Positions 3,401-53,090 of a stretch of DNA of 64,000 nt are shown here, piece after piece. Each line of letters opens with the position of its first letter. Position 1 is the first letter of the stretch. The notes beneath the pieces were generated by a model. It was not told the origin of the DNA. It was given only the letters and a program-made list of their open reading frames with translations, and did no database searches. The DNA lies in contig NC_068983.1 of assembly GCF_001194135.2 (NCBI RefSeq), forward strand, positions 142,778,264-142,842,263, read 5' to 3'. This DNA comes from Octopus bimaculoides. Taxonomy: Eukaryota. The translations under genes and the position numbers were made by a program.

Positions 3401-3699
3401 AGATTTGACTGTTATTTCTAGCATGTAAATAGCCTGCTTGGTGGGGGCGGGGAATTGAAATTTTTCAAAAAATTTTTTTTCAGAATCGGAATCTCCATAG
3501 ACTAAAACGTGGGATTCCGTAAAAAAAATTAATAAATAAGTGGGGGGGGGGAAGGTTCAGATTACATATAGTCCATCTCTACCAAACGATAATTTCAGCT
3601 GTTTGAAATACAGAAAATAATACTTTTAGTTGCAGAAAAGTATAATATAATGGGACCACAAAAATCTCTTGCTTTTTCCTCTCTTCGTGCATAACAACA

Positions 3700-3965
3700 A
3701 ACAGGTGGTCGCAAGCATCTTTTCTCACCAAAAAGGTATATTTCTATATTATTATTATTGTCTTGTGTAGGGAAATGAAAAAAATGTTATGTAAAATAGA
3801 ATTTCGTGGAATTTATGTTCATTTCTATCTCAACGTTTTCTCAGTAAATATTTCTTTGGGTGGAACTGGGAAATCATTATTTTCTTGTCCGCGAGTCAAA
3901 ACGTCGTAATGGAAAATAAGTCAAGTTCACTATCAGCTGATGTCGAACTTGAACTGGTGAAATAG
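3700..3965 (+). promoter_or_regulatory. Possible promoter and non-coding first exon of KICS2, ending at a donor-like TAG|GTGGGT
   Basis: Coding exon 1 has an acceptor, so an upstream exon is needed. This region has non-repeat CpG-containing sequence and a plausible donor at 3966. Purely inferential. Confidence 0.25.
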
Positions 3966-8749: not shown

Positions 8750-10129
8750 TCATATAGTTTTTGTATGTGGCAGATGCTCAGGAGCAATAAACACTGAAAA
8801 TGTGCAGAAAACAACCTTTGCTACACTCCAGGGAGGGAGAAAAACTAGAAGTAGTTGATAGCTTCCACTACCTAGGTGACCAAGTTTGTAGCAGGGCGGG
8901 TGCGCTGAAAGTGTAGCTGCTAGAATAAGAATAGCCTGGGCAAAGTTCAGAGAGCTCTTACCATTGCTGGTGACAAAGGGCCTCTCACTCAGATAAAAGG
9001 CAGACTGTATGATGCATGTGTACGAACCGCCATGCTCCATGGCAGTGAAACGTGGGCCGTGACTGCTGAGGACATGCGTAAGCTCGCAAAAAACGAAGCC
9101 AGTATGCTCCAATGGATGTGTAATGTCAGTGTGCATACTCAACAGAGTGTAAGTACCTTGAGAGAAAAGTCGAACCTAAGAAGCATCAGTTGTGGTGTGC
9201 AAGAGAAATGATTGCGCTGGTATGGTCATGTGGCGAGAATGGATGAGGATAGCTGTGTGAAAAATTGCCACACCCTAGCGGTTGAGGGAACCTGTGGAAG
9301 AGGTAGACCCAGGAAGACCTGGGATGAGGTGGTGAAGCACGACCTTTGAACTTTAGGCCTCACCGAGGCAATGACTTGTGACCGGGACCTTTGGAAATAT
9401 GCAGTACGTGAGAAGACTCGGCAAACTAAGTGACAGCATAATCTGTGGCCTCTGCCAGAAGTGTAGCCAGCTTACTTATTCGTATCTTTACTTCATTGGA
9501 CACTAAACTCTGCTTGCGAAGACTTGTTGAGACAAGTGAATTTGAAATTGAAATCAAACCAGATTCGATGACTGGCACCCATGCCAACCTCTCCTTCATT
9601 GGACACTAAACTCTGCTTCCGAAGACCTGTTGGGGCAAGTGAAATCAAAATCGTAATTGAACCATATTCGATGACTGGCACCTGTGCCTTGGATCACTAA
9701 CAGCACTGTCCGAGCGTGATCATTACCAGAGCAGCTGTCTGGCTTCCATGCTAGTGGCCTGTAAATAGCACCATTTAAGCATGATCGTTACCAGCGTCGC
9801 CTTACTGGCACTTATGCCGGTGGCACGTTAGAAAATCATTTGAGCAAGGTCGTCAGTGCCGCTGGACTGGCTCCTGTGCAGGTGGCACGTAAAAAGCACT
9901 ATTTTGAGTGTGACCGTTGCCAGTACTGTGTGACTGGCCCTCGTGCCAGTGGCACGTAAAAGCACCCACTACACTCTCGGAGTGGTTGGCGCTAGGAAGG
10001 GCATCCAGCTGTAGAAACTCTGCCAGATCAGATTGGAGCTTGGTGCAGCCATCCAGTTCACCAGTTCTCAGTCAAATCGTCCAACGCATGCTAGCATGGA
10101 AAGCGGATGTTAAACGATGATGATGATGA
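8750..10129 (+). mobile_element. 5'-truncated RTE-clade LINE with complete 3' UTR and (GAT)n tail
   Basis: Remnant EVVDSFHYLGD...RIRIAWAKFREL...GRLYDACVRTAMLHGSETW...LRWYGHVARM...GRGRPRKTWDEVV (frameshifts, stops); 3' UTR with an internal duplication of about 100 bp (9491-9690). Confidence 0.9.
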
Positions 10130-10618
10130 ATAATTACTAATTACTCATGATAGCATAAAAGGATAATTACACGTGCTTGTTTGAAGTAATGATAAAATAA
10201 ACTTGTACACTGGTGGTTGTTATATTTCTAAAAAAATATTTCATTCAAGAACTTAGTTTACATGGTTTGAATTGTTGAAAATTTAATATACTCTTCAATG
10301 AGAACCAAGTCATTTTAGACATCAAGCAATTAAGTAACATGTCCACGGTGCCATAATGCTAAAATGTTAAAAGAAATGGGGCAACAATAGTTTATTATTA
10401 TAAAAATAAAATCAAAATACCCTACAAAATAGATCAAATGCTTTCATTTATGTTCTGGATTCATGTATCATTACTGTTTGCTTTATCTTTCATCCTTTGC
10501 ATGTGTTTAAGTACTACAAGTTTGACTTTGTGCTTTATCAAAACAAAATATTTAAATAACTTTAAATGCTACATTAAACTGTGTTGGATTGATGATCAGG
10601 AGGCATCATCATCTTCCT

Positions 10619-10815
10619 CATCATCATCATTGTTTAACGTCCGCTTTCCATGCTAGCATGGGTTGGACAATTTGACTGAGGACTGGTGCAACCGGATGGC
10701 TACACCAGGCTCCAATCTAATTTGGCAGAGTTTCTGCAGCTGGATGCCCTTCCTAACGCCAACCACTCAGAGAGTGTAGTGGGTGCTTTTACGTGTCACC
10801 CGCACGAAAACGGCC
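10619..10815 (-). mobile_element. RTE 3'-end copy
   Basis: Reverse complement of 9953-10129 over about 175 bp with few mismatches. Confidence 0.85.
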
Positions 10816-13581: not shown

Positions 13582-15759
13582 TTAAGCAGATTGTTGAAAT
13601 GCTTCAGATGGTCTGTTAGCTATTCTCAATAGTTTAGTGATCTGAGTTCTGTAGATTTGTGTACTGTCACAAAAAACAACTGATCTCTCAGTTTCTGGCT
13701 TAATATATGCACTCAGCTATTTTGCTCTAATGATATTAGTTTATATCTTAAAGCCAGAACTTTTCTAATATCTCTACATTAATTATATGATTCGATCCTT
13801 TTGTAGAAGTTTGTTACTTCTATTTTGTTAGACATGGAATTAGAAATTTTGTCAGTTGCATGAAAACATTTTCTATTATTGGGTTTCTTTTTTTTTTTCT
13901 CTTTTACCAGCTATTCTTTAATGACATGCACTTTTTATCAGAGACAGTTAATATAATGTTGTTCATATGAGTAATAAAAGAAGGGGAATGGTTGTGTATA
14001 TTTACTATTGGACCATCAGCTTATGGAGTTTGAATCCAATTCTGCTTCAAGTAGTTCATTATTCCTTGGCAGTATACATTGTTTCATCAAGCTACAAAGA
14101 ACAGTAACCAGATCTTCAGGATAAAGTCTCCTATTCAGGGAAAGATTCATCTTATTTGTTTAACACTATGAAACTGGGGCTAAGTATTAGTTCCAATGAA
14201 CCACTTGGATCTCCAGGAGATATTCAAATTACTATATTTTCATGGAAGTATTTACATAATAGTATTATTGCTGTAAAGTGATTTGAACTGTATCCTCTGG
14301 AGAGACAATATGAATTTGAACAATGTATTAGTAATTTATATTTATTCCTATGTGCTTATGCCTTTTGTAAAATTGCTCTTTAAATCATTCTTCATTCTGA
14401 AATAATTTAGATTCTCATTTTTTTTTTACTGTGTGTCTAAAGATGGAACCCGTGACTGACTGATTATAATTTGTTTTATTGTGTGAACATAAATCCATGT
14501 GCATACAAATACATATTCATAAATACACACATATATACACAGCAAAAAATTGCCTTGGAACTTTGTTGTTTTGGAATAGTGATATGGGTCAACCAATATA
14601 ATAAACAAGTAAAAGTACAAATGTTAGAAATCATTATGAAAAACCTGTATTGAATGTAAATAAATAGTTTACTCAGTTGACTGTGTGAAGTATCTTTTGT
14701 TTAAATTCTGAATAGAGAAATTAAATAACAACAATAATGCTAAATATTAGAATACATCTGTTCATAAGATAATAATTTTTTTGACAACTATCCTCATGAA
14801 AGGTTTTTGTTTAATATTCCCACCTAAACTGTGGTTTCATTAAAATAAAACACCCGATGACAAATATCAAATTGATTGAAACAGCATATTGAAAAATTTT
14901 TCATCTCTAAAAGATATCATTAGTCTGAAACATAATCTTATTTACAACTCATCTCAGACATTTAATTTTTAACCATTCTTAGCAAGGATTAATTTTGTCT
15001 TTGTAGGAGATTGGTTAGGTTGAATGAATTAAGACTAGTATATGACTGAATATTTTTATTTTATTGCTTCTGTTAACTGTGGTATAATTTACATGTAGAA
15101 TATAATGGGTGCAGCTAAACAGTGTAATTCAATTTAGCAAAGCCCTTGACTATTTTTGCCAAGAAACTGTGTTTTTCTTAATGAGAGTTTCTACTGATCA
15201 AATCCAAAGTGATAGTGGTCTGCCAACCTTAGGCTTGGCAGTTTATATACAGTTTATAATCATACAACCAGCATTATTGCTTCTGTGTCTCTGACAAATA
15301 CTTTTCACTTTCATTAATTTGCTTAATACAATGAAGTACAGTTCACCATTACAGTAGAACAAGTAGAATATTTGAGCATGATACAGCTGGTTTAAATGCT
15401 AAAGGGTTAAATCACATACTTCCATCTAAGAAAGGGACACATTAGATGTGATCCAAGGTACACTGCATTTAGGAAAAAAAGTGAGATCTTTAAGCACAGG
15501 TTTGCTTGATTAGAAATCCCTTGAACAATAAAAAGAGCCTTGAAAATTTATGATCAAATTCTCTAATGGTTTTAGTGAGAATGTGTGGAAGCTTAAGAGA
15601 ATCACCCTCATCACCAAGCTGAAAGTCTGCCTTGCAGCTGTTGGAATTTTAAATGCCTATGATCCTGGATTGTCTATAGGAGACGTACAAGATAACAATT
15701 TACACATGAGGTGTCTCCACATATTTAGCACATTCACCTGAAATTTGACATGGAGGGTT

Positions 15760-16898: not shown

Positions 16899-17042
16899 AT
16901 GCGTGGAAGTGGAAGTAACAGTAAGGTACAATCACCAGTTTCTCCCAAGACCCCATCAATGTCTCTGCGTGAAGAAAAAATTATTGAGGACTATTTTCAG
17001 CTTATCAGTGAATTCAATTTTGATCAAGCCAGAGAGTTAACT
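16899..17042 (+). CDS. KICS2: KICS2 coding exon 1 (MRGSGSNSKVQSPVSPKTPSMSLREEKIIEDYFQLISEFNFDQARELT)
   Basis: T-rich acceptor candidates (AG ending 16881 or 16890) upstream of the ATG imply an upstream non-coding exon; donor ACT|GTGAGT at 17043; phase 0. Confidence 0.9.
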
Positions 17043-20000
17043 GTGAGTTTTGTTGTATTTTGTTTCATTTTTATTTTTATTATATGTTTTTTTTGTTTTT
17101 TTTTTAAATTTCTTATTTCAATCTTTGTCCTTTTTGAATATATTTCATATTTTGATATGCATCAAGAAAAATGACTCTTTGTGGATGGGCAAGTTAAGAT
17201 GTTGCATTATAGTTGAAAGGCTGATAGTTCATATCCTCTAACCAGAACTAGTGTCCAAAATTAAGATACGTAACACTTGCAGGCACAGTTCAACAATCTA
17301 TATCATATAGTTTCAGTGAAAGAACAGAGATGACATAGTGTATAGGAACTCTTTAGTCGTGTAAGAGATCAGTTCTCTCTGTTGTCATTTTTACAACTGG
17401 ATGTCCATTCTATCACCAGCCACTCCACAGTGTGGACAGGGTGCATTTTATTGTCACACACAACACTTTTACATTTTAGCTAGTGTGTATAAAATGTGTG
17501 CTGTTATTGTTTAGACTCTGGGCAGCTTTGATTGAGCAACATATAATGCAGATCCTATATAAGAAGCTGCTCTGACCACCACTCCTCTTCTCATAGTTTA
17601 GCCTCATCCCCTAGCAAGAAGCTGACCTCCTCCTCTGCCACATCCCCAGGGTTCAAAATCCTTCGTGCTGCATGGCAACCTCAATAGTGCAGGTGACATG
17701 GAAAAAAGCACCCAGTACATGCAGTAAAGTGATTAGCATTAGGAAGGGCATTCAGTTGTAAAGTAAAAACCATACCAAAGCAGATATTGGAGCATGATGC
17801 AGTCCTTGGTCTCATCAGATCTTGTCAAACCATTCAACCCATGCCAGCACAGATCATGGACATTAAATGAGGATGATGATAATTATATTCCAGTTTTATC
17901 TATTCCTACAAAGTGTATTTAAAGCATAGTGCATTTAAGACTATATTGTCCAATGTACCTTTCCTATTTTCAGATGATAGATATGGTCGAAGACGATTTG
18001 GCTGTTATTTCTAGTAGGTTGAGCAACCAACTCTGTTGTTGGTTCGTATTTTTATATGTGTAGTGACAGCTTGTCAATCATCATTTTGTTTTCCCTGAAG
18101 TTGTTTTTAACTAATTGATCTGACATGTAAATACATAGTTTATTGCTGAGCCAGTATTGTATAATACAGAGATTATATAATACTGTCAAAAACAGAGCTT
18201 CTATTTAGTCACGTGACCTGCTAGAGTAGCCAAATCTTCTTTGAATCACACTTTACCATTGTAAAAATGAACTTATTGAATTCTAGATATACTATAGCTA
18301 GGAAAAAAGATAAGATTGTCCATTGCTGTAATGCCTTTGAATATAGATCTGCTTGATTAGGGCTATGTAGCAACATTATCTTAATTTCAAATATACTTTT
18401 CCTTTTTTAAAGTTTTGTTTAACTATACCTTATTCCTCCTCCAAGATGCTTTATTATAATGTTAAACCGATTCAGTACTTGACTGCTACTTTATTTTATT
18501 GACTCAGAAGTATGGAAGGTAAAGTTGTCTTGGCTGTATTTGAACTTGGAATATAAAGGGCTATCAATAAATACTGCATACATTTTGTCCAATGCTCTAA
18601 CAATTCTATCATTTCAAAATTGTTAAAAACAATTCTCATCTAATCTTCATTACCATGTTTTTTGTTTTGTTTGTTCAATGCAGGAAAGAGAAAGAGATTT
18701 CACAAAATCGAACATTACTTCACATTGGCATATGTTTGTCAATGCACTGATTTTGTTAGCAAATGATGAGAAATCGTATATGTCTTTATCATTTCTTGGT
18801 CCTAAATGGTTTTCAACTAGACATAAAGATGTGAGTAAATATATTTATATATTTAATTTTCATTATAATGCTGATGTGGTGTTTTAAAAGTTTAGTTTTG
18901 TTATTTAGTTTTAAAATAATACCCACTGTCTTTTGAAAATTGTTCTACTATTATTGCATTATGAATTGGGTACTTAATTATTTGATGATTGGTAAATAAC
19001 TTGGCTAAATTTTTCATTATAGCTTAAACTGTAAATGGTGAATGATGGCATATCTGTATAGACATGCCATCCAGTGTTCACTTTTGTACATTTATTTGAT
19101 TATTCTTCCACCATTTTTTCAGTTTCAATGATTCTCGTAATGATTCAATCTGTAATGACTCAAGTGAAGGAAATAATGATTCTTCCATCATTACTTTTAG
19201 TAGAAGTATGGTGGAGTCTGTGCTTTGTCAATGAAGTTAGTATAGAACTGAGATATATCTTTTGTAACTGCCAAATAATATTGGTTGTTGACTGATATTT
19301 TTCTCACTGCATATTTATTTCTAGTTAGAATTTTTAATGAAGTCTTCATTGAATGTATTAATACTAACTTAATATTTAAATAAAAAGGCAGGAATAACTA
19401 TAAACTGAACATGTTGATAAGTTAGTCAGAGGAGGAGTACCTACAATTGTTGCCAGATACTCTTAGACTGATAAGATCAGTGTGGTTACTATTCTATTTG
19501 AACATTAGATGTCTACTGGAAAAATATAGCTATGGTGGAACATATATAGAGGGTTGCTGTACAAAAGAGAAAATTCGAGGATAAAAACTGGTTTAGTGGA
19601 AGATCTGGGAGGAGGAATACAGTTGGAATTATAGGAGGGAAGAGGAGTTACTGAAAAACTGAAGAATGTTTGTATTATTTTTGTTATAGACTAGTGCAGA
19701 GAGTAAAGCAGCACTCATGACCTTTACGAGATCTCTGAAACATATGAAGGACAAAAGGTGGAAGAAACCATGATTCATGGATTGCTTTCATAGGAAGCTA
19801 TGTATTAAGATTCTGAGTGATCTTTAAACAAGAACTTGTTCTGACTGTTGGCAACTGAGTGAATTCTGCTAAAAGCACTCAAAGATCAGATAATGTCAGA
19901 TAATGTTAACACCAGTATCAGGCCACAGCTTTGGTTTTAGTCTAGTAGGCAATCCAGAAGAGAAGAAACTGCTTTAGTTCACAGAGGATGGCAGAGTTAT

Positions 20001-23000
20001 TCCACCACAACAAAACTACTCACATTTTCTCAACAGAAATTTAATAAAGGTCATAGAAATCGGAGTTAGTTCTGGGAGGAACATTTGCTCTCTGGCTGAA
20101 GTTGAATACTTTGAAAAGTAATTACAGGAAGCAGAATTAATAATTGATTGGTCTGTATTTTACCAACCTCACAAGAATAAAAGTTAACCTTTCAGTTGGT
20201 TGGCAAGCACATTCACACATATGCACACACACATACACGTACAAATATATATACACACATTCATACATGCTCCCACATACACATATGTATCTATGTCACT
20301 TTAAATGAAGTGTGCAGTAATGCACAATAGGTCATTTTGTCATCACTGATAACCTGATTTTCTTGTGTAATGTATCCAGGCAAATTGTATGCAGATACCA
20401 TACCTCTTCAAGCTATAGACTATGCCTGGTACTAAAAATCACAAGCTGTAGTAAATAAAGTGCTTTAAGAAATAACCAAGTCTTTTTATTTCAGATTTGG
20501 TTTGTTGAAAATCATTCTATGATGTATACATGTACACGTGCTCACATACATGCACAGATGCGTGCACACACACACACGCCCCCCCCACACGCCCCCCCAC
20601 ACAGAGTGGTGAGTTGTTTCTACCCAGCAGCGCCTATTTTCATCTATATGTAGTGGGCATCATGTGAGTTAAATATCTTAGCTGTAGACACAACAGTGTC
20701 ACTGGCAGGCCATGAAGCACCAACCTTTCGACCAAGTGTTTGTGTATGTGTTAGTGTGTTTTTGTTCATTTGTTTTATGCCCACTTTTTCTTGGTAACAT
20801 AGGGTAGATATATATATATATTATTGAAGCATTGTTTTATAGTCAAATTCTCTTCCTGACACTAACCCTTACCTGTTTTCAAGTAAGGATTCCCTTATTT
20901 CACTCTTCTTTAAAGGTGTGAAGTGAGTAGTCAATTTGTTGATAAAAGTGACTGCAACACCATTGGCACTTTCATTGAGTACAAATGTAAACACATAGGC
21001 ATGTGCATTTGCATGCTCACACACACATACACAGAGACTTCTTTCAGTTTTTAGCTGCCTAATTTACTTACAAGGCTTGGTCAAGCATGGCAATGTGGTT
21101 CAGTCATACTGTGTGACACCTTGGATGTTTTTTACCGCAGTTAACCAAAGCCGTGTGATTTGGTAGATATAAAAAATGTTTGCATGTGTGTATGTTTTCT
21201 TGTCTTGACATCATGTGTTAATTGCAAACATTTTTCATTGTCTTACAAGCTGTGACATCTGTTTGCAATCCTCTCTGAAAACATGTCCTGACTAGAGAAA
21301 AATATTACTTTGTTTGGAAACAGGTGAAGGTTGGTGACAGAAAAGCATCCAGCTCTAGAAAATCTGCTTCTACAATGCTCATCTTACTCCGACAAGTATG
21401 GAAAAGTAGACGTTAAAATGATGACAGATTTGAAACTGTTTAGTTTTGTATTTCCATCACTTTTCAATGTGACTAGTGTAACATTAGTCTTGTTAAAAAC
21501 GGGAAATGCAAAATTCTTGAGTAGTAATAGAGAAAAGCTTCAGTTTCAAATATATAGAATCTATTGGGTCATCCCATAAATAATGTGGTTTTTTTAATAC
21601 TTCTATTTTTCAAAATTAAGATAAACAAAGTTCTTTTTTAATTTAAAATATGCTCTCTTTCATTTTCTACAATGCTTTTCCATCTATCTGATAGACTTGC
21701 AAGGCCCCCTCTTCTAAAATTCACTTGTCTGTGATGAAAAATACTCCTCCAGTACTGTTCTGACCTTTGGGTTTAAAAGTTCAAAGTGGACTAAACCTTT
21801 CATATCCCACCAAACAGATAACAACACCTTACGTGGGTGAAGACCTTCTGTAGCCTGGGGTGCCGATGTTTCTCCTTTCCCTACCCATTGTCTTCAGTGC
21901 TAGACATTTTTATATAGAACCCATTTCTCATCACCAGTCACTATTTGGTCCAAAAAAGGTTCATTTGTGATGTAACAGCAAAGAAGAGCACATATTCACT
22001 CTCTGTGTGCGATTAGACACGGAAAGTTTGGGAGGAACTCATTAACCCAATTTACTGACTTTTTCAATAGTACACAGATGTCGATGAATGGTTGAATGAT
22101 CAAATCCAAGCTTCTCTGTTAGTTCCTCAACAGTTACGATGGAATTTTGTTCCACCAGGGTTTGCAGACATTCTTGTCAAGATCTACAGATCTTCCAGGA
22201 TGATCTTTTAGGCTGTAATTTCTGGCTTGGAATTTCTGGAATTACTGTTGACACTGGCTTACATTTATTGTCTGATCTTCATATACTTCATTAATATTCC
22301 TCACACTTTCCATTGCGTTGTTGCCTTTATTGAACTCATAAAGCAAAATATGCTGAATATGCTCCTTTGTCACTTCCATTATAGCTTTGAAAAAATAGCT
22401 GCTAAAATTGAACTGCACTCTTCAAAATTTGCACTAAGAATAATTATAAAGTAAAATTACTACCTGCTTTTATAGCAAGTTGATGCAGGTAGTTTATCCT
22501 GTCCTGGTCTGATTTTTAACTCATACAATTGAAGAAACTGCATTATTTATGAGATAACCCAATACTTAAATGCTTTTTTTCCTTTTTGTTTGTAAATTCA
22601 AATGTGTAAATCGTCATCATCATTTAACGTCCATTTTCCATGCTGGTATGGATTGGACAGCTTGATAGGAACTGGTAAGGCCAAGGGCTGCACAAGGTCT
22701 CATCTGTTTTGGCTTGGTTTCTACAACTGGATGCCCTTCCTAATGCCTATCATTTTACAGAGTGTACTGGATGCTTTTTTACATGACACCAGCACTAGTG
22801 CTTTTTATGTGACACTAACACCAGTGCTTTTTACATGACACCAGCACCAGTGCTTTTTACGTGGCACCAACACCAATGGTTTTTATGTGGCACCTTGATT
22901 TTAGGATATCATTTCTGTTGTGGTGGGCAGTTCTTCTTAAGTACAGCAATGTGCCACATATCTAGATCCTCTGTCATCTCCTTTGTAAGGCTTAGCGTTT

Positions 23001-26000
23001 TGAGATCTGCCTGCAATACTTCATCCTGTGTCTTCCTGAGTCTCCCTCTTCAACAATATCCCTCTACTTTAAGTGATTGACACTTGTTTATGCAACTATC
23101 CTCTTCCATCTGCTTCAGGTGACCAAACTGGTGCAGTCTCCTCTCTTGCATACTGCATGTAATTCCTATTATGTCTAACTTTTCTCTCAATACAATAGTG
23201 CTGTGTCACACATATACACTGACATTCCAATCTCTTCTTGTTTCAGCCTGGTCAAAAGAAATCAGTTGTTAATAATAAACACCTTGTGAGATTTTTAATG
23301 TTTTGTTTATATGTCAATATTTATTTAATCTTTTAACAAATTTGTTTTTTGTTTGTAACTCAGACCCTGCGGAATTCATACCAAAATTTGATTGCAGACT
23401 TTCGAAAGATCTATGAGAATGTTCAACAAAATGAACCACATGTTAACTTAGATGTGTTATTGGGTCATTTGTGTGAACACCTTGAACACTTTCCAATGGC
23501 TCGCTTAAGAACTATGGATCTGTATCCTTAATACTTTTATATTTATGTGTTTCTGTACCCCTCACTTCTATATTAATTTTTGTTCTTTTTCAGCTCCACA
23601 TGAACCTTGATTGAGTATACCTTGATAGTTATCATTTCTTGACATGACCACCCAATCTTTTTTCAAACATCATGTATCTAGGACTACAACATCTGATATG
23701 TGCATTTTTTCTAAGTTAACAGAGTGTGTTTTGAGGGAGATTTGACTGATGCCTAAAGGAAGACTTGAACTTGGTACCATAAGCTAAAGAACATGAAGAA
23801 TTGATAAAATGAAGTTTTAGTCAATTACTGGGGTACCATGTAAAAGGCACTCTGTCCCCTCTGCTGGGTGGTTAGTATTAGGAAGGGCATCCAGCTATAA
23901 AAGCTATGCCAAAACAGACACACAAGTCCGGTGCAGGATGGAAGGTGGATGTTAAATGATGATGATGATGATGAATTTATCAGCCATTCCTCTCCCGCAA
24001 AGTCCTGGTTTTGTGCCTGCAGTAAAAGCAATTATGAAACAGTGTATGCAATGTTATTAACAAAAAGTTCTTATGTAAAATTATGATGGAAGATTTGAAT
24101 TTGGATTTGAACACTTTAAAATGAAATTTCATGTCCCTGATTGAAAGATGGTCTAAAGTTGGTTGGTATGAAAAGGGTTAAAACTAAATAAATGCTTTGT
24201 ACTTTGAAGTCTTCCTTGACTCTGTTAGCTATGAGCAGCTGACTACTATTGGCAACAATAGAAATTTCAACTATGAAGATCCAGTTATAGTTTGTACTGA
24301 AATTGTTCACACATACCAGAAATGCTTTCATCATCCCTTGTTAAGCCATCTGAAAACAAGCTTTAAGTATGTAAAGAATTTGCTCTTTCCTAGTATTTTT
24401 TTCTTCTGATTGTTAAAATTCTTACTTGATGTGAAGTAAAATAAAAACGCTTTTTCTTTTATTCCATGAAAGAAGTTTATCTCAAAACTAAACCGAACAA
24501 TTTATATGTTGATAGCTTAACGTTCTTTAGTCAAGGGTGGTAGGTGAGGATTTTACAAGTCAAAGGGAGACAATTTATACTTCTGTCTGGTACTGCATTG
24601 TGTCTCCAGGGTACTAATTAATGTATTTTTAACTTTTAGGAAAGGAATACAAGCCTTATCAAAGGATTACTTTTGCTTAGCGATAAGTCAACCCTGATTG
24701 ATTAGACTTATGATTAAAGGCGTTCCACTCACGCCCAGATTATACTGGCATTATTATTATTAGAAATGGGTGAAGCAACTTAAGCCATCCCTATATATAT
24801 ATNNNNNNNNNNNNNNNNNNNNNNNNNNNNNNNNNNNNNNNNNNNNNNNNNNNNNNNNNNNNNNNNNNNNNNNNNNNNNNNNNNNNNNNNNNNNNNNNNN
24901 NNNNNNNNNNNNNNNNNNNNNNNNNNNNNNNNNNNNNNNNNNNNNNNNNNNNNNNNNNNNNNNNNNNNNNNNNNNNNNNNNNNNNNNNNNNNNNNNNNNN
25001 NNNNNNNNNNNNNNNNNNNNNNNNNNNNNNNNNNNNNNNNNNNNNNNNNNNNNNNNNNNNNNNNNNNNNNNNNNNNNNNNNNNNNNNNNNNNNNNNNNNN
25101 NNNNNNNNNNNNNNNNNNNNNNNNNNNNNNNNNNNNNNNNNNNNNNNNNNNNNNNNNNNNNNNNNNNNNNNNNNNNNNNNNNNNNNNNNNNNNNNNNNNN
25201 NNNNNNNNNNNNNNNNNATATGTATATATATATACATATATATTTATTTATATATGGTAAATGAAAGACGGAAGATGGAATATACAAGAATTTCTTATTA
25301 ATCATGACAATTGTTTCGATACATCTCGCATGTGTGTATATATTGTTACGTGTCAGACAAAAGGCATCAGCGAATGAAACAACAACCCGTAGGATTTTAG
25401 ATGTGTATTGATATAAATGAATGGTATAAAACACAGATTGAAGGCAGTTCAAAGCTGTTATAACCATTTGAGTCCAAAACACAAGCTGTCATATGTAGTT
25501 TGAATATATATATCAGTTCTTAATGACAGGTGGATTTCCTTGATTCATTGCGAATCCTCAAAAGGCCATCGAAACAAAAGGGAGGTCACCGTTACCTTTT
25601 CTTCTTGTGTTGTAGTTTACTGTTTATGTCATTAGTAGTAGTAATAAGCCCTTAAAAGGTGATAGTGGTAGAGAGAAAAGAGGAAGGAAGACAGAATGGT
25701 ACTTCATTCTGCGTGTCATTTCAACAGCTGTGAAGAAAGACAGAATGACACTTGACATTTTGAAATGAGCTAGTGATAAACATTAGTCGTCTCTGGTCCT
25801 GGTCATCTCATTAAACTCCCTCCACTAACTGCTCTTGGCTTACGAACCTTCTGTATTTATAATTCTTGCAACACAACAAGAAAGAGGGACATATCACTCT
25901 GAAAACAATGGAAGCTGCTGTAGGTATCTTCCTTATCTCCTGTCAACTATTGTTTGCATAGGAGGGGTTAAATCAGCTTGGTATAGGCCGTGTTTTGGAT

Positions 26001-29000
26001 GTCTCAGCAGTCAATTATTGGTGTCCATGAGCAAGTGCTGTGGTATGTCAAAAGGGAATTATGTAGATTCAGGTTTGAATCAATATGCTTAAATGAAAAT
26101 CCACTTTTTTCTTTCCAAGTAAAACATTTTTGTAATAATATATATTATATATATACATATATATTGTTTGTGTATATATATGCCCAGTTTAATAAACACA
26201 GGATTTGTAGGTAAGCTACTATAAATTTTGTACTTGAATAGTATAGTAATCAGTTGGGCTTGTATTGCATGCTGTGTGCTATCCTGAAAAATTGCGGGCT
26301 AGTACAGGACACACTACTGAAGCCGATCAGATTATTGTACTGCCCAAATATCAAGCATATGGTAGCTCAACTATAAATATTGTGTTTATTATATGATACT
26401 TATCTCTCATTGATTGGAGTATTTTTTTCTTGATACTACCAACAACAAAACAGCACACACATGCACATACCAAGCTTCTGCAGTTGCATCTATCAAATTT
26501 TACTCATAAAGACATCAGTCAATCCAAAATTATGGTAGAAAATACTTGCCCAAGGCACTGTGTAATGGTATTGAATATAGAAGCATGTACTTGCAAACTG
26601 AATTGCTAAACCACTCATCTATGCCTGCACCTATATTTTTAAGTACTTATAGTCATCTATATTTTTATTGATACAGCTACGAGTGTGAAATTATTCAACA
26701 TTTGCTGACCACACAAATTCTAGTTTCAGAACTTGATTATTTACCAGCATTGTTACAACTTCATCAAGCACACACAAAGTTGGCACAATGGGGTACTTGC
26801 TTACCAGCTAAAGAGGTAAACAAAATTCATCTTTTTTCTAATTAAAAAAAAACAAAAAAAACTTGCTTATTTTTCACTTTAAGAAAATTCTTATGTTTCA
26901 AAAACTATAATTTACACATGTGATACAAAGGAACATTTTTATCATTAAACGCATTATGTTGATTTCTGTCTGAGAATTTCATTAAAGTCCCAAGTCTCTG
27001 TTGAAGGCTCAGTCATTTACATTTTAATTCAGTGAATAGGTACTGGAGCAGGCTGGTTACACTTAACACAAAAACTAATGTTAGGGTGCATTGGCATCAT
27101 TATTTGTCGAATCTTCTTTTGAGCAGAGTACTGGTATCTGTTTTATTAACACTGGATAAATGAATGGCAAAATTTGTCCTTGCAGTATTTGCACTCAAAA
27201 TCATGAAGCACCAAATTAAATACTATAAATAATGGTTTCTGTAAGTTGAGTTGCTGAGATCCCAGTCCCCACCCCATCAGCTCCATGAACTACTATATTC
27301 TATCAGAAAAGGAGAAAATAGTCAAGTGACTAAAGTTTTGAATTCAAATTGATTATAAGAATGTTATTGTGTTCAGAGGTAATATACTTAAAACTTCATG
27401 TAACCTTTCATTATGCTATTGAGAAAAAGTATTATATCCAGTAGCAATGATACTTGAGATAAACCAATATCATGTTACTGAGGTCAAATTTGACAACTCC
27501 AGTAAGCACCAGCCCTTAAATATCTCTGGATCATTAACTTTTATAGAATTGTAACAAATTCTAAAATTTGCAAACCAAATTCTTGTGATACGAAGGCATG
27601 AGAAATGTGTAAATGAAATAGCCTTTATTTAATGCTCAAACTTTTTGTTTCTTAGCAAAAGGGTCTTGTCTGAAACATCAAAACATAGTTTCTCGCAGCA
27701 CACAAGCCTATTGGCTTTTTTTCCCCACTGCAAATAAGGAATAATTTCATTGGACTCGTGTTTTTCCTAAATTAACTTTATTTTAAATAATTATCAATAA
27801 TTGATAAAATTCTTGGTGAATTGACTCTTTGACCAATTGCATTTCCAGCCTGAAACTACTTTCTTTGGTAAATGTCTTTCATAAATTCTAAAGTTACATA
27901 TATAATCAAGAAATAAATATAAAATATTTTTTAATAATCAAATTTTTTTGATAGATTTAAAAAAAATTCCTATTTATAATCTTTTTTATTTTGTTCAAAT
28001 TTGATCTGTGTTCTAATAGAAGTGAAATGGTTTTGAGATTAAGATGTTGAATTACTCTCCTCATGGTCATAAGTTAAAAATCTTACTAAAGCCATTGTGT
28101 TTGTACTCTAGAACAATTATATATCATTATTTGCTATAGTAAACAGTTGGTTTTACTTCTACATCATAATTGGGTAGTTTTCAATAAGAAAAGCATTTAA
28201 TTACAAAATTACTCCTACAAAAACCATTCTATTTATGCAAGCATGCAAAGATGGATTTAAAAAGGTAAGAATTGAAGAAAAAATATTGGTGTTTCGTAGA
28301 ACTCATGGGATCCTCAAAAAAACTAGTTTGTTGGGGAGAAAGAGCAAGTGAAAGACAAATGTAATATCGACTGACACTTAGCTTCTTCTGGACTAGTTTA
28401 CATAGCTATACATAGATGTTGTAGGTAGACAATGCTCATCTTTGTAAACAGTGGGAGCACTGCAGTGTTAATAAATGCATTACTATCTTGTAATATTAAA
28501 TCCAAGTCCTGTTGTGGGACTGGAGAAAGCAAAATGATGCTCTGAGTTTAGTTTCAGACCAGTCACTGTTCCAGTTAGAATCTGAACAATGGTTGTCATA
28601 GGCTGCATGTGCTGGCTGATACGCAGCAGTTCAACTTGTCAGCTGAAGATAGGCAATAGCCATGATCCTTTTCAGAATCTTCAAGACTGGTAGAAAGAAT
28701 GGAGGGTGTTATCCTCAGACATGAATGACTCTTAGTTTTGAATGCACACAACAGAATGGACCTCAATCCATCTCCTAGCTCAACACTACCATGATGCCTA
28801 AAAGCAAACGAAAGGCAATGTGATTAGTTGTAATTAGCTGGTTGATAGTTTCAGCCTACAAACCAAAAACTGGCTTCTATACACTTCCATCAACCGAATT
28901 TCATTGGCAAAGCTTTGGTCAATGTGAGGCTATCATGAGAGATAGGTACTCTAGATTCCATATGCTGGAATTGAACATAAAACTAGATAGTTGCGAAGTG

Positions 29001-29730
29001 GACTTCCTGAACCACTTGATCATTGCTGCTGACAATAAAGTCACTTGACTAAAAAGAATTTTGTCAAAGCTTCAGTTTGCATGGCCTGAAGCTACAGTGT
29101 TCTAATAAATAAAATCCCATCTAATAGTTAAACAAACACCTTTATTGATTTTTAAAAACTCTTTTTCTTACTTATTGTCAGCAATAGAGGAAAGACAATG
29201 CAGCTGGTATCATCTAAATATTGTTTAATTATTTCACATAGATAATCAAATAATGACCATGATGCAGCTCTCTCTCTCACACATACACACACACACATAC
29301 ACAAACTCACTCACTCACACATGCACACACACACACAGTTATTATTTGAGACATATGATATTTCAGGTTGAATGTTTCTTTTATGTATTCTTTATATATT
29401 TTTATAATTATCATTGTTATTTTTTTTTCCTTTTATAATTAAATTGTTAATGAGAAAAACGTTTATCTTGATTGAAAATGTTCCAATAGTAGTTTACCAC
29501 TTATTTCTCCTATTTACAAGTTAGCACCAGTGCCCAGTGTTGGTCCTGTAGTGGCCAAATGCACTGTGCCTGCTGCTGACCCTATGGCTCACACTGCTAG
29601 TCGGGTAAGTAGTTACTTGATGCTTTTAAAATTAAAGTCATGATGCTGAAATTGTTGCTATAGAAACACATAGTTGGTATTTTTCAATCAGGATTACTTT
29701 CCTTTCGTTTTATTTTCTTTGTCTAAAAGT

Positions 29731-29768
<38 letters not shown>

Positions 29769-31695
29769 TCACAAACGTCTGTCCATTCAGCCTTCCACAT
29801 CCACACAGTTATAACCCTCACCATACATACACCTACTCATACACACTGTAAAGTCTTGTACAACTATGATGCATTTGAAGTTCCACAAAAGAATTCTTCT
29901 TTGTGCATTGATTCAGGAGAGGATACATGACAGCAGTTGCACTAAACTTTCTTCAAGCCCATGGGAAGACTTGAGATCAGTGCTTGCTGTTGAGTGAGAG
30001 ATAAGTTCCCATTGAGTCGATACTCTGATAGTTTCAGTTTCTGGTTGCAGTTATTTTACATCACATCACTAATGCTCCATTTCCCATCACAACCTTAAGA
30101 CATGAATATCACAACAGCCATTTCTCCTTCTTTTATAAATTAAAGTCTTGGGTTTACTCAGAAGAGAAAGTAGTTATTCAGTGCTACTCTGATACTTAAT
30201 AAAAGTTTAAGTGTCTTTGCCAAGAGCCAGTGAGAAACAAACATGCTTTCAGTCTTGTTACTTGTAAACTCTCTAGTTATATAGCTGATCATTTTTAAAA
30301 CCATGAAGGTACACTACCACCTTGCCCTTGGATTTTTTTTACAGAGTCCACTTTGTTGCAAGTATTTTGACCAAGTCTCCGGTCTAAGGATGACTCACAC
30401 CTTTCCTCACAGTGTCTAGGAGGATGTAAATCAGAAAAACAAAAAAACAAAAATTAAGAAATAAAATCAGTATTTATTATCTAGCAGTTTATTAACATGT
30501 TTTTGCTGTCAGTGTTTATAATCATGCTGCCTGGCATTCTGTATAATCTTATCTTAAAATTTCACAGATCTATATCTGTTTATCATTTGCTCTATGCTAC
30601 AGTCAGCAAGTTAAATGGTAATTTCATTTTTGACTCTTAAACCCTTTAGTGTTCAAATTAATGTCAAAAGTAATCCTTATTCATGTACACGTTAAAAAAT
30701 TAATCTGGTATTATCTTGTAACTTCAAGATTTGAGAGATGTAATTGTTTATTTTTAGAATGACATTGCAGGGTAGATGTGAGATACTGGTTCTGGCCAGT
30801 TTGGGCATAAAAGGAGTAGAATATTTGGTCCGGATATAGCCGGTTTAAACACTAAAGGGTTAAAGAAGTTAATAACTTTCAAAACTGGTAGGGGGCTTAG
30901 TTGGAGTTATGCCATTATTAATATTTTGCATTAAGACTAAATATGGTTTTAAAAATATTAATAGTATGAAGATTAAATATGCTTTTACATAGAGAAACAT
31001 TATACACATTCTTTTATTATTTCATCAGTTCCATTTAGTGTGTGTGTATACATATGCATACTAAATTTTATTCATAAAGTTTAAATTGACCAAAGACTAG
31101 AAGATATTTGCCCATAGTTCTACACACTAGATGTGTGGTTGTGAAGCGAGTTTTTTCACCACACATTCATGCCAGTACATCATGATCATCATCGTTTAAC
31201 ATCCACCTTCCATGCTGGCATGGGTGGAACAGTTTGACAGGAGCCTGAACCAGATTTCTGTGTCTGTTTTGGCAGGATTTTTACAGTTAGATGCCCTTCC
31301 TAACACTAACCACTCAGCAAAGTGGATTAGTGCTTTTTATGTAGCACAAGCACAGGTGAGGTCAGTTTTGGCAAGGTTTTTACAGCTGGATGCTCTTCCA
31401 AATGTCAACCAGTTTACAGTGTGGAGTAGATGCTTTTTAAGTGGTACCTGCACTGACGGGGTTACCAAGTAACTTGCAAGACAAAAATCTCTTGAGAGGG
31501 GAGGGGGCATTGGAAGAGGTAATCTTGTGTTAGATGATGAAAGGTTATAGTGCGACAGAAACAGGTGTCTTGCTGTAGAGAAGATACAAGGTTACCTGGT
31601 CGGAGAGAGAAAGAGATCTGGAATGAGAACAGAAACAGGTGTGTTGCCACAAAGGAGATACTTGGTTACCCAACCTGAGGGAAGTGCAGGAGAAG

Positions 31696-37700: not shown

Positions 37701-40700
37701 ACTTATTTTCCAATAAACATGAAAAATTTCATATTGATTATGGACTGTATATTTTGTTTTGGATTTTTACTTATTCAGTACAGCTATTTATTTATTTCAA
37801 AAGTTGTATAGGTACTAAACAATAAGCTATAGTTATTTACATTGGATTAACAGCTCCTTAGCACATTCCTTGAATTCATAAATGTGACCAACTGACTGAT
37901 TCAACACCAAAAATATGCTATTTTTCCATCTTGTCTAATTGTTTTAACTCACTACATTTGAATATGTTGGCTCTCCAGTTAACTATATATTCTCCATGCA
38001 GGATACATCCTTGCAAAAATTTCCACTTTAAATTACTTAATGATTGTTTTACACTCAGAATCTCTAGTCTTTGTCTTTTTAAAACTTTGGTAAGTACACA
38101 TAAAACTGTGCTTTGCTAGGGAGGTCAGATGAGACTGAAGTGTGTTCAAGGTGTCACTCTACTTAACAAAGATCAGTCTCATTTCCTCACTTCTGACTGC
38201 ATGTCCCCATCAGTTTTTAATCAATTTGGATTTCAGAGTTGTGCCCCTTAACTTTCTTGGTTATAATTTTCATTAATGCTTATGATATTTCTCTTCATTT
38301 CAGGTGAAATTTGAATTGATTGAAATTTTTCTGTTCACTACATTGTTATATATTGATTTCTTATATTAGCAGAAAATCACAGATTTGTAAGGGAGGGATT
38401 GTAATTGAATTGATTCCAGTGTGTGACTGGGAATTATACATATCACAGTGGCATGAAAAGAGAGGTCAACTGTCAGTGTATATGAACTGAGAAAGTTACA
38501 ATTTCCTTGGATTTTACTGTTTCCTTTAGAGTTTATTATAAATTTTTGTGGAAGCTGAAATATTTCCATGGCCAAGACCATCTCATGTAATTGACAACAC
38601 AAAGTGGTATGTTGTATGCAATACTGCTGCAAAATTGAGTTACTTTTGCAGCGCTGAGTCTAATTCCAATGCATTCTTGTTGTTTAGCCTTAAAACATTC
38701 CAGCCTTGATCAAAAACATTCCATCCATGATCAAAAAACATTCCAACCATGACCATCCTCTCTTTTCACAGTTACATAGGACTATATTATCTATTTTGTC
38801 CCGTCTTTATAGAAGATAATAGGGTGTGATAATAGGAAGATTTAGCTGCTATTTCTAGTAGATTGAGTGATCAAGTAGTAGCTTCATCATTTTAGATATT
38901 TCAATGATACTGCTACAAAGCTAAGTTATCATCCTCTGAGTATTTTCTGGAACTTTTTCTGCATCACAAGCATCATGATCACTATCACCCCTATCATTAG
39001 TATGTTGTGCTTTTCCATCCAACTAAAACTTCATGTTGGATTGGGTTGGGCAGGTCTTCAGCTTACGGTTATGTAGCCATTGCCCTGTCTTAGGAAAAAG
39101 TACATAAATTTGCTTCCTGAAAACAGTTTTCAATCCTTTACCACAAATTCTGATTTCATAGCCACTTGTTTTATAGTTACTTCAAGAATATGCTTGATTC
39201 ATAAGAAAATGGTCCAGTATTGAAAATAAATTTAAACTATTATGGAAAATGGATTAAAAAAGTAAAAATTTTCCAAAAGCTAATACATCAAACAATACTG
39301 TAGAGTCATCATTATTATTTACAATATATTTTATTTCATTTCAGACAAAACGATCAGCATTCAGTGTTACTTCGAGCCGACAGAATTCTTGTTTAACTCT
39401 TTTCACATGGCTCCTTAAATACAAGAATTTACTCCTGTCCAAAGTGAGTTGTTGTTATTATTATTATTATTATTATTAATGTTTGGAAAACGAGGACACT
39501 TGTTCATGGCTCATAAGTTTTGTTTGAAATTTGTTGTTTTAAAATTTAGTATTTGAATTTTTGCTGGCCTGTTTACTAAATAAGCCAGCTCACTTTTCTT
39601 ACAAGTTGGTTTAGTAAAAATGGGGGAAAGAAATATTGAGCTGTAGAGGTGAGATTCGCCACAGAGGATGAGACCAAAAAGCACTCGACAACCTCACTAA
39701 TGAATGACAAACTGATACTCACCCACTTTTAGTTTAGCTGAAAGGTCTTTCAAATAAAAATGATAAACATGATCCCTGAAATCAACATTTGCTGGTTGGT
39801 GGCAGTGGTCCTCTTCAACATAGAACAGAATACCAGTATTTTGCGGATACGAAGACTACAGAAACAAAATTGGTTGAGCCAAGGAATGGATTTGTTGATC
39901 CAAACAAATAGAGCTAAGTGTCAAAGTAATTCCAAACGTAACAATCCTACCTGATGGCACAAAGCTTCATGTGACTGTTGAGAGTAAAAGGGTTATTATT
40001 ACTACTATGGCTTGTGAGCTGGCAGAATCGTTAACACGCTGGACAATTCGTCTGTCTTTATGCTCTGAGTTCAAATTCTACTGAGGCTGACTTTGCCTTT
40101 CATCCTTTTGGGGTTATTAAATTTACCAGTGAAACACTGGGGTCGATAAAATCAACTAGTCTCCTCCCCTCCAATAGGTCTTGTGCCTATAGTAGAATGG
40201 ATTATTGACCTGGCAGAATTGTTAGCATGCTGGGCAAAATGCTTTGCGGTATTTCATCTGTCTTCACATTCTAAGTTTAAATTCTACTGAGGTCAGCTTT
40301 GCCTTTCATCCTTTCAAGGTTGATAAATTAAGTACCAGTTGTGCACTGGGTCAATGCAATCAACTGCTCCTCCCCCTCCCCTAAAATTTCAGGCCGTGTG
40401 CCTAGAGCAGAAAGGATTTTTATTATTATGAAGTATACAAACTGGACAAAAGTACTTAGCAGCATTTCTTCTGGCTTTGCATTCTGAATTCAAATGCTGC
40501 CAACGTCAACTTACTTTTCATTCCTTTTGGGGTTGATAAAATAACTACCTAGGGTTGATGTAATTGACTAACCAATTATCTGAAAATTGATGACCTTGTG
40601 CCAAAATTGAAAAGAATTATTATTATTATTACTACTACTTCAAGGTGGAGGATAGTTGATGAGCAGACTCAGTAGAGCACTGAACATAATGCCTTGAGGT

Positions 40701-43700
40701 ATTAATGTTTTCAATTCAAATCCTCCCAAGGTCAACTTTGTTTTCATCCTTTCAGAGTTGTTAAAATAGAAATCCAGTCATATACTAGGTTAATATAATA
40801 TCATCATCATCATTTAACATCTGCTTTCCATGTTGGATGGTTTGACTGAGGGCTGGTAAGCCAGGAGGCTGTACCAGGCTCCAACCTGATCTAGCAAAGT
40901 TTCTACAGCTGGATGCCCTTCCTAACGCCAACCACAAGAGTGTAGTGGTTGCTTTTTATGTGCCTCTGCACAGCATGCCAATTCCCTATATTTGAAGCCT
41001 TGTACCTATGTTAAAAATCATTGTTACTTATGGATAGTAAATGGCAGAATTAACAGAATTTTGTTTATATTGTCTTTTGGAATTTTGTTACATCACACGA
41101 GGAGTGAGCTTGATGAAATAAGAACCAGTCAAGTACAGTCAGTAAAATGAACTGTACCCTCTGTCTTCAAATTCTGGGTTTTATCTTATATCAGAAATCA
41201 TTGTTTATTATTATTGAAGTGTAGTGGATGACAGAATTGGTTAAGCATTTTGAGTGAGATGACAACCATCTCAGCTAAGTTTATCATCACAATAACTTGT
41301 GGAATGTATAAATATTTATCTCTTATGACATTAAAGGAACAAACATCTTCACACTATAATAATACAGTGCTTGCCTTTACATGTTCAGAAATATCCATCA
41401 ACAGACAGGCAAATATAATATTGATTTTAGGAGAGAGACAGAAGATAGTTGGGATCTTTTCTTTTTGGCTGCCACTTTTCAATTTCTTCAGTTTTGTTCC
41501 AATTGATTTTATATTTGGTGTATCGACGAAATTTTTGTATTGTAATTATTGACATGAAATTCATTTTTGCCATAAATCAATAAATAAAGAGTTAATAGCA
41601 TTCAAAGTTTGCAAATTTTGGGTAATTAAATCAAAAGCCATAGACATATAGGTGCCTTTCCATAGTAATAAGCCAAACTGTTAACCAGCTACTTACTCCT
41701 CTGTTGCTGCCTTGTCAAGCCCCATGGTCATTCTTCGCTTATGAAATGCTTAAAACATGAGGTATGAAGTGGTTGTGAGATGTGCTAAAAATAACAGCTA
41801 AGTAGGCCTTAAATCATGCACCAAACTTTTTTTTTTTTTGCAAAATCACGAATTCCTGTGCATAGAATACAAATTCACAAAAAATTTATGAGGGGTTATA
41901 TGCAAGCACAAAACAGAATTCCACCAATATTTCATTTGTTTACAGTTTGATATTAAAATGTACAAAATGACAGCTTCCAAAATCCTGTTTTCTGACTGGG
42001 TAAAAATGATCAAACTTTAAATCTATGTAACGTTTTAAAACAAGTGAACAAGTGAATTAAGCCCTGAGATTCAGCATGAAAAACTACATCAATACATTTG
42101 AAAATCACTTAATAATAAAACTTCAAAAAGTGCAACCAAACAGAAAAAAAACTGACTACTGCAATGTTCACATTCTATTGAACACTATCAGTCGTGAAAG
42201 TGTCATTAAATAGCTATAAATAGATCGAGAGCATGCCATAGGAACTTATATTGTATTTTCCGTTGGTCGCTACGTTTTATGACGAATGTATATCTCAGTA
42301 ATTATTGTAAAGATCAGGATGACTCAACTTTTAATGTAGAGTCACCCTATTTGTGAGTGATCTGTTGTTATTCTAAGCATGGAATTTTGTCAGTGAACAG
42401 GTCACGGTCTCAAAGCAACGAAAATATTTTGACAAATTAAATTTAAATCTTGAAGTGAATCTAACGATTTTTGTGTTTTTTAAGTGGCTTATAAACACCT
42501 TCCACGCTGCAATTGTTTATTTTAACATTTAACTCAATAATTATATATTCGTTCTTTCAGTTTAGTATTTACTTCTACGAAATCATTAACAAGAATGCTA
42601 ATTCACCTTTAGAAATGAGGAATCTTTGTTCTAAACTTCCGGAAGATTATTACACACGGTAATAAAGCATTTCATTTGTTTGTTTTGCAATTAGAAAGTT
42701 ATCTCCCCTGTACTTTTTAATGAAAATTTTCTCAAATCTACTGGGAATACGACCATCCTTGTGTAACCATTTACCATTATTAAGAATTATTTGTAAATAT
42801 ATACATTTAAATTTTATTGAAGTTGGTTTTATATAATCTTTCACAATTCCTATGAACACAATGATATAGTTTTTTCCCCATCCTTACAGGAGTTAAATGG
42901 TTTCGTAATTTTAAACTTTTGTAATTCAATACAGCCCATATCAATTTCTCTGCAATATAGGAAAAGTTTCTTTTAAGATTTTAGCTGTGCGTATTCTGCG
43001 GTAAACAGAGTTATCTACCCTACTTTGTGATCACTGCTTCTGATTTGATATTTGAATTTTAAAATGTTCGTCTGTTAATTTAATAACCTGTCACATTCTA
43101 ACAGTTATTAAGAATTTTTATTCTTAACATTTTAATAGAACTGATTAAATACTGATATATGACAGCCTTGAGATATATAACTGCTGTGAGTATGTTATGT
43201 AGTCCTAGTTAGCTCTACTTGAACCTACAGTTTGCGTACCCTGTATATGATAGCCCTGTTCATCCTGAATTATAATCTATATTTAGATCTTATCTCAAAT
43301 TCAGATAAATTAGTTTTCAGATTATCTTGTGAACCATACCATCATTGGTTATAGGTTTTCAATGCGTCAAATAATTTATTGTATTTCTGATGATAAGAAT
43401 GGAAAGAGAGTCTTTGCAACTTGAGCAGGATAAATACTACAAGGTATAGGAAAGTAGGTTATACATCATTAGATGTATACCTGACTTTCCTATATAAAAT
43501 TAAAAATATAAACGGAACGCTGAACTCCAGACTATCAACACTAACAACATTTATTCAGGTGGTAAATATATACATCTTTAGCTCTTGTTTGTTGTTACAG
43601 CTTCTGTGTGTGTGAGCATGGTTGTTGGGACGTTGGTATGTAGATGTAAGCGAGCTGTCGAGCGTAAGTCCGAAAGATGGAGAGAGACAGCTAAACACGT

Positions 43701-52798: not shown

Positions 52799-53090
52799 CA
52801 TCATCATCATCATTGTTTAATGCCCTCTTTCCATGCTGGCATGGGTTGGACAGTTTGACAGTAGCTGGCTAGGCAGGAGACTGTATCAAACTTTTGTGTC
52901 TGCTCTGGCAGGGTTTTTATGGCTGGATGCCCTTCCTAACACCAACCACCCAGCAGAGTGGACTGGGTGCTTTTTACATGGCACAAGCACAGGCAAGGAC
53001 AGTTTGGCATGGTTTTTACAGCTGGATACCCTTCCAAACACCAACCACTTTGCAGTGTGGACTGGATGCTTTCTAAGTAGCGCCAGCACT
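52799..53090 (-). mobile_element. RTE 3'-end copy with duplicated core
   Basis: (CAT)n tail; the GCTGGAT(G/A)CCCTTCC(T/A)AACACCAACCAC core is present twice. Confidence 0.8.

Follow-up and report, generated by a model that had tools for sequence, protein, structure and literature searches.

Is the third intron of the KICS2 gene of Octopus bimaculoides a minor (U12-type) intron, and if so, how far back in animal history can it be followed? The gene lies in a stretch of 64,000 nucleotides (nt) (assembly GCF_001194135.2, contig NC_068983.1, positions 142,778,264 to 142,842,263 of the forward strand), which is called the window here and whose own numbering is used throughout. A sequence-only reading of this DNA had proposed that U12-type donor and branch motifs are present in the intron at 23522-24228, that the gene is KICS2 with nine introns, the other eight of which have ordinary U2-type donors, and that output of KICS2, through its messenger RNA (mRNA), may depend on the minor spliceosome. 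It also proposed a comparison across species, and it named a U2 classification by position weight matrix as a result that would contradict it. The analysis below indicates that intron 3 is very probably a genuine U12-type GT-AG intron that was inherited from the common ancestor of cnidarians and bilaterians; the position of its splice junction, the scores of its splicing signals and the recurrence of those signals at the same codon in other animals are considered in turn.

The gene and the position of the junction

Exons were found with a human KICS2 sequence, used as a lead only, together with inspection of splice sites, and the exon model was then verified against PDB, Pfam and RefSeq. The KICS2 (KICSTOR subunit 2, C12orf66 homologue) coding region occupies 16899-48892 on the forward strand, stop codon included, and its 10 exons (16899-17042, 18684-18830, 23364-23521, 24229-24366, 26677-26815, 39345-39443, 42561-42658, 44424-44589, 46222-46326 and 48725-48892, all forward, the last with the stop codon) and 9 introns specify a protein of 453 amino acids. 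This product is letter for letter XP_052822561.1, the O. bimaculoides RefSeq "KICSTOR subunit 2 isoform X2", and in a PDB search its residues 24-453 align to human KICS2 chain 9o5a_F (E=1.8e-86), while the human KICS2 chain 25gf_D is also matched (E about 1e-86). When joined, exons 3 and 4 (23364-23521 plus 24229-24366) form a single open frame of 99 amino acids, HFPMARLRTMDLYEQLTTIGNNRNF, which matches Pfam PF09404 (C12orf66_like) with E=9.8e-21 and matches human KICSTOR subunit 2 chains in PDB with no gap over the junction. A homologue search with this two-exon peptide gave no matches, and one with full-length KICS2 and alignment queries returned just six proteins, none of them from a vertebrate. 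The gene is KICS2, so both the name and the nine introns proposed earlier stand. Its role as a KICSTOR member that restrains mTORC1 is transferred from work on mammals and would apply to the octopus protein by analogy.

Intron 3 (23522-24228, forward strand) is 707 nt long and in phase 2. Exon 3 ends with ATG GAT CT and exon 4 begins with C TAT GAG CAG (L YEQ); the DNA reads ATG GAT CT/GTATCCTTAATAC over the end of exon 3 and GAAGTCTTCCTTGACTCTGTTAG/CTATGAGCAG over the start of exon 4 (here and below a slash marks a splice site), with the terminal AG at 24227-24228. Across the joined positions 23521 and 24229 the protein reads ARLRTMD-LYEQLTT, and its alignment to ARMEIAD-FYEKMYT of human KICS2 has no gap. 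Four AGs lie between the in-frame stop codon at 24185-24187 and position 24260, and 24227-24228 is the only one that keeps the frame, as had been claimed. The same junction is used in XP_052822561.1 and in RefSeq models from Argonauta and three Octopus species, and the exon junction itself is thus already in RefSeq. It is found again in a related cephalopod, whose protein, 72% identical to octopus KICS2, is encoded uninterrupted on contigs of 1.9-2.4 kb from four sequencing runs; these are taken as mRNA because their 1362-nt coding sequence is unbroken, and over the site they read ACAATGGATCT/CTATGAACAA, that is, ATGGATCT/CTATGAA.

Could this junction be an artefact of gene modelling, with the true splice sites elsewhere? 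One model of the same gene, UniProt A0A0L8G9Z0 (418 amino acids), is wrong at another place in that it has no exon 9 (46222-46326, 35 amino acids), an omission that is most likely an annotation error because exon 9 is kept in human KICS2 and in all other orthologues. At intron 3, however, there is a sole frame-preserving AG and a gap-free human alignment, the junction recurs in the RefSeq models of four cephalopods and in the mRNA contigs just described, and six other genomes have an intron in that codon (below); we regard the probability of such an artefact as close to negligible.

Two further observations concern the gene itself. An 84-nt cassette exon (LAPVPSVGPVVAKCTVPAADPMAHTASR) lies in intron 5 at 29521-29604 (forward strand), flanked by ttacaag/ and /gtaagt; it is included in the 481-residue isoform X1 of O. 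bimaculoides, skipped in the 453-residue isoform, and is also present in O. sinensis, O. vulgaris and Argonauta models. Intron 4 contains an assembly gap (a run of Ns at 24803-25217), and its assembled length may therefore differ from its true length.

Splicing signals of intron 3

Directly after exon 3, positions 23522-23529 match the U12-type consensus GTATCCTT exactly, and the whole 5' splice site reads tct/GTATCCTTA (23522-23530, forward strand), with T at -1, C at -2 and no AG before the junction. Near the other end, the branch-site 12-mer TCTTCCTTGACT (24210-24221, forward strand) has the core TTCCTTGAC at 24212-24220, CC at its positions 5-6 and C at position 11, and the predicted branch A is at 24219; it agrees with the branch-site consensus TCCTTRAC, in which the A stands at position 9 or 10 of the 12-mer. 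The AG of the 3' splice site (24227-24228, forward strand) follows at a distance of 9 intron bases, or 10 if one counts to the first exon base, and between branch motif and AG there is TCTGTT alone, with no distinct polypyrimidine tract. The remaining eight introns start with GTGAGT, GTAAGT, GTATGT, GTAAAC or GTAATA, end with a pyrimidine-rich tract and CAG or TAG, and have 6-8 of 9 matches to the U2-type consensus MAG/GTRAGT.

For 77 minor introns (Olthof 2019 Table S2 part 1, PMC6717393), the human 12-mers at 5' splice site and branch site were turned into log-odds matrices, 44 human GT-type minor 5' splice sites being used for the first matrix, and the base composition of the window was the background. 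Intron 3 scores 14.4 bits at its 5' splice site and 13.7 bits at its best branch site, and both values are within the training range, whose minimum, median and maximum are 6.9, 15.1 and 17.8 bits for the 5' splice site and 6.0, 11.5 and 15.3 bits for the branch site. All eight of the other introns have negative 5' splice-site scores (-17.4 to -2.6 bits) and reach at most 2.5 bits at the branch site. On these human-trained matrices intron 3 scores as U12-type, and the earlier statements that the two motifs are present, that the pyrimidine tract is missing and that the eight remaining donors are ordinary U2 donors are all borne out.

The intron also resembles individual human minor introns closely. 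Its 5' splice-site 12-mer, TCTGTATCCTTA, differs from that of human TMEM150C, TCTGTATCCTTT (whose branch site is TTTTCCTTGACT), by one base, at +9, and its branch-site 12-mer differs from that of human ZDHHC11, TCTTCCTTGACA, also by one base; the published scores of the TMEM150C and ZDHHC11 sites are 98.4 and 88.6, respectively, on a 0-100 scale (Olthof 2019 Table S2, PMC6717393). T at -1, a non-zero phase and the absence of a pyrimidine tract are shared with human GT-AG minor introns, and enrichment for T (not G) at -1 and for phase 2 or non-zero phase has been reported for U12 introns of the GT-AG type (PMC7367187). The gene and the phylum differ from those of the human introns, and the spacing between branch site and AG is 9-10 nt rather than the optimal 11-13 nt.

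An ordinary U2-type intron might carry U12-like ends by chance, and taken singly the motifs would allow this, since each is at background frequency in the window: GTATCCTT occurs 2 times (2.1 expected) and TCCTTRAC 4 times (4.2 expected), so that neither is enriched. The 5' splice-site score of 14.4, however, is reached by only 2 of the 7051 GT sites on both strands of the window and the branch-site score of 13.7 by 3 of its 127,976 12-mers, and the joint probability of finding both motifs on one homology-defined intron, with the branch site correctly placed, is ~1e-7. The 5' splice site, moreover, matches U1 at GTA only (3 of 9 positions of the U2-type consensus), having C at +5 and T at -1, and both motifs are retained at the same codon across phyla even though the interiors of the introns have diverged (below). 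That the motifs sit on exon ends defined by homology does not seem accidental, and it is this placement and the recurrence in orthologues, not word frequency, that make chance unlikely; we consider a coincidental resemblance very improbable.

Elsewhere, the window does contain what we judge to be a chance pair, GTATCCTT at 35556 and TCCTTAAC at 37392 (forward strand, intron 5), which serves as a negative control: its members are 1.8 kb apart, no open reading frames (ORFs) flank them and the next AG is 21 nt off. A second U12-like pair, at 14290-15163 (forward strand), lies 5' of the KICS2 start codon. There, ACT/GTATCCTCT at 14290 scores 15.8 bits and is one of just two GT sites in the window with at least 14.4 bits, and AAGCCCTTGACT at 15140 reaches 10.6 bits, its A being followed by an AG 14 nt on. 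The pair lacks coding support, no similarity between this region and the one upstream in Argonauta was detectable, and either coincidence or a minor intron of the 5' untranslated region could explain it.

The same intron in other animals

Genomic loci of KICS2 orthologues were fetched, their exons mapped and their introns scored on the same 77-intron matrices. Seven species, octopus included, have an intron in this codon, all in phase 2 and always after the second base of the L, F or V codon in the motif M-x-[LFV] followed by Y-E/D. In five of the six species other than octopus (molluscs, an arthropod, an echinoderm and a cnidarian, so that four phyla are represented) it is U12-type, and in one snail it is degenerate. 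With scores given as bits for 5' splice site and branch site, followed by the distance from the branch A to the intron end, the octopus intron reads tct/GTATCCTTA and TCTTCCTTGACT (14.4 and 13.7; 9 nt), that of the cephalopod Argonauta hians tct/GTATCCTTT and TTTTCCTTAATT (16.7 and 12.0; 11 nt), of the bivalve Mizuhopecten yessoensis gtt/GTATCCTTA and ACAACCTTAACA (14.8 and 6.6; 10 nt), of the decapod crustacean Panulirus ornatus ctt/GTATCCTTT and TTGTCCTTAACT (16.0 and 14.8; 12 nt), of the sea urchin Diadema setosum agt/GTATCCATT and CTTTTCCTGACA (11.6 and 5.1; 14 nt), and of the cnidarian Nematostella vectensis ttt/GTATCCTTT and TTTTTCTTGACT (15.1 and 11.2; 15 nt). These five introns share codon, phase and U12-type signals with octopus; they differ in length (375 nt to 12.8 kb), in spacing (10-15 nt, against 9 nt in octopus) and in the branch motif itself, the variants being TCCTTAAC, CCTTAAC, TTCTTGAC, TTCCTGAC and TCCTTAAT. 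Inside the intron, not even octopus and Argonauta share conserved sequence, and the splice signals are therefore what was maintained.

The degenerate copy is that of the gastropod Bulinus truncatus, where the intron is 134 nt long (locus 3589-3722) and reads att/GTACCCCTT and TTAACCTTATCG (4.8 and 1.2 bits; 9 nt), with AACCTTATCG 9-10 nt before the AG and CCTTATC as its branch motif; by these sequences it may be a minor intron in decay or conversion. Three other species have no intron at the site. In the sturgeon Acipenser ruthenus the sequence ATTGCTGACTTCTATGAAAAG is uninterrupted, and KICS2 has three coding exons, against ten in octopus, although the vertebrate protein is orthologous and can be aligned with that of octopus from end to end. 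In the ostracod Notodromas the site falls within a large exon that no intron interrupts there, and in the nematode Ancylostoma, which also has no intron at the site, an ordinary GTAGGT...TTTCAG intron is found nine codons downstream. C12orf66, KICS2 and mouse BC048403 do not appear in the complete human and mouse minor-intron tables (Olthof 2019), an absence that a loss of the intron in vertebrates fits. The comparison across species proposed at the outset thus gives U12-type introns in the five species above, degeneration in Bulinus and absence in sturgeon, ostracod and nematode. On the simplest reading of these sequences, the cnidarian-bilaterian ancestor already had a U12 intron at this KICS2 codon, which was then kept in several phyla and deleted independently in vertebrates, in some ecdysozoans and possibly in others.

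Regarding the sturgeon gene, we considered the idea that the introns flanking the lost site are octopus introns 2 and 4, and dropped it, since the positions are a few codons apart. In the deposited sturgeon protein, exon 1 ends with an unusual insert (GRPCLTTRHRRRIEVKMR) that resembles read-through into the intron.

There is a continuum between the intron classes, and U2AF1 binds to some minor-like introns (PMC11347168), so that intron 3 might instead be a hybrid that either spliceosome can remove, in which case KICS2 would not be strictly dependent on the minor one. The short octopus spacing would go with this, as would the Bulinus copy, which demonstrates that the intron can drift from consensus. 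On both matrices, however, the octopus copy scores close to or at the median of bona fide minor introns, and it has neither A at -2 and G at -1 nor a pyrimidine tract. A 5' splice site without that AG and a branch site that has CC at 5-6 and C at 11 have been linked to ZRSR2 binding or use of the minor branch point (PMC11347168), and the octopus features go with ZRSR2-only binding or the minor branch point. A hybrid intron is, in our estimate, improbable.

Several points nonetheless weigh against classing intron 3 as a U12 intron that descends from the cnidarian-bilaterian ancestor. The case for U12 dependence in this species is built from sequence and conservation. The matrices derive from 77 mammalian introns and are neither those of intronIC nor trained on molluscs. 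At 5.1, the branch site of Diadema falls a little short of the training minimum of 6.0. The octopus spacing of 9-10 nt, which the sequence-only reading had correctly described as short, is below the reported optimum of 11-13 nt (PMC3584512; PMC6717393), yet within the 8-30 nt window used for classification (Sheth 2006, PMC1557818). Finally, a scan of the window with Rfam gave no match at all and hence no gene for a minor small nuclear RNA, a result restricted to the window and uninformative either way.

Neighbouring features and expected consequences for KICS2

Apart from KICS2, the window holds repeats and fragments of mobile elements. A family of short interspersed repeats (roughly 100-150 bp, 75-94% alike, often followed by (GAT)n) was found by blastn of intron 3 against the window, with copies at 23831-23977, 52890-52984, 31178-31339, 10614-10801, 9953-10135, 22610-22744 and 40800-40935; the first of these, with its (GAT)n run, lies inside intron 3 and is separate from the splicing signals, and the ORFs that turn up repeatedly in these copies, such as LAGFLQLDALPNTNH, are spurious. 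On the reverse strand, a 199-residue ORF at 50211-50810, downstream of KICS2, is a fragment of a Tc1/mariner-like transposase (Tc3-type helix-turn-helix PF01498, E=2.5e-08), and a 270-residue ORF at 60677-61489 is a fragment of a retroelement of non-LTR-like (long terminal repeat) type (reverse transcriptase PF00078, E=2.1e-26). In addition to the gap in intron 4, N runs mark assembly gaps at 2807-3353 and 62846-63024.

If intron 3 is removed as other minor introns are, U11 and U6atac would pair with /GTATCCTT, and U12 would pair with TCCTTGAC, bulging the predicted branch A24219. By analogy with known minor introns, the 5' splice site and branch site would be read together by the U11/U12 di-snRNP (a double small nuclear ribonucleoprotein), after which U6atac would displace U11 (Turunen 2013, PMC3584512), and the AG at 24227-24228 would be picked for its closeness to the branch, with no polypyrimidine tract involved. 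The minor spliceosome would then be required for productive KICS2 mRNA, as the sequence-only reading had suggested; this would follow from the U12 class, and it is equally true of every minor-intron gene. An in-frame TAA stands three codons into the intron (23529-23531, forward strand): in phase 2, GTATCCTTAA is read ..G TAT CCT TAA, so that translation through a retained intron 3 ends with RTMDLYP and a stop at residue 152, and unspliced RNA therefore cannot give functional KICS2. The likely fate of RNA that retains the intron would be confinement to the nucleus or degradation.

One can go further and suppose that slow or stress-tunable minor splicing sets the dosage of KICSTOR and hence the threshold of mTORC1 nutrient sensing, that this is why cnidarians, echinoderms, arthropods and molluscs have kept the intron for >600 million years, and that vertebrates lost this layer of control with the deletion of the intron. 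U12 introns are reportedly excised two- to five-fold more slowly than U2 introns (Turunen 2013, PMC3584512), and in the largest survey most features of minor-intron retention were compatible with neutral evolution, so that the evidence to date leans towards a largely neutral retention (PMC10639083). We think it quite unlikely that this regulatory proposal is right. Among the other KICSTOR subunits, KPTN is listed as a "HumanOnly" minor-intron gene, and SZT2 and ITFG2 are not listed (Olthof 2019 Table S2, PMC6717393). The KPTN intron is in another gene, has weak signals (CAGGTATCCCCA and TCTTCCTCAGCT, with a branch-site score of 67 and AG at -2/-1) and is human-only, and it is not comparable with the octopus intron in strength or conservation.

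A search within one library of papers found none that connects KICS2 or C12orf66 to minor or U12 introns; the intron listings of IAOD, MIDB and Larue lay outside its scope. Hundreds of minor introns are present in genomes of this kind and the class is well known; what is added here by comparison, an ancient origin and a loss in vertebrates, is modest. Molluscs and Octopus sinensis are covered by genome-wide surveys (intronIC and MIDB), and the pan-eukaryotic survey found molluscs to be relatively enriched in minor introns and had O. sinensis in its conservation comparison (PMC10639083); IAOD covers 24 genomes, and the text of its paper mentions no molluscs or octopus (PMC7367187).

No new kind of biology is opened by this intron, which is one well-supported addition to the known set of ancient minor introns. 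Since vertebrates no longer have it, an observer who starts from the human genome can readily overlook it. Its U12-type signals would add a negative mTORC1 regulator to the genes that require the minor spliceosome in many invertebrates, and a single site that is strongly U12 in lobster, octopus and sea anemone, degenerate in a snail and deleted in sturgeon, ostracod and nematode may provide a series in which the loss and decay of minor introns can be followed.

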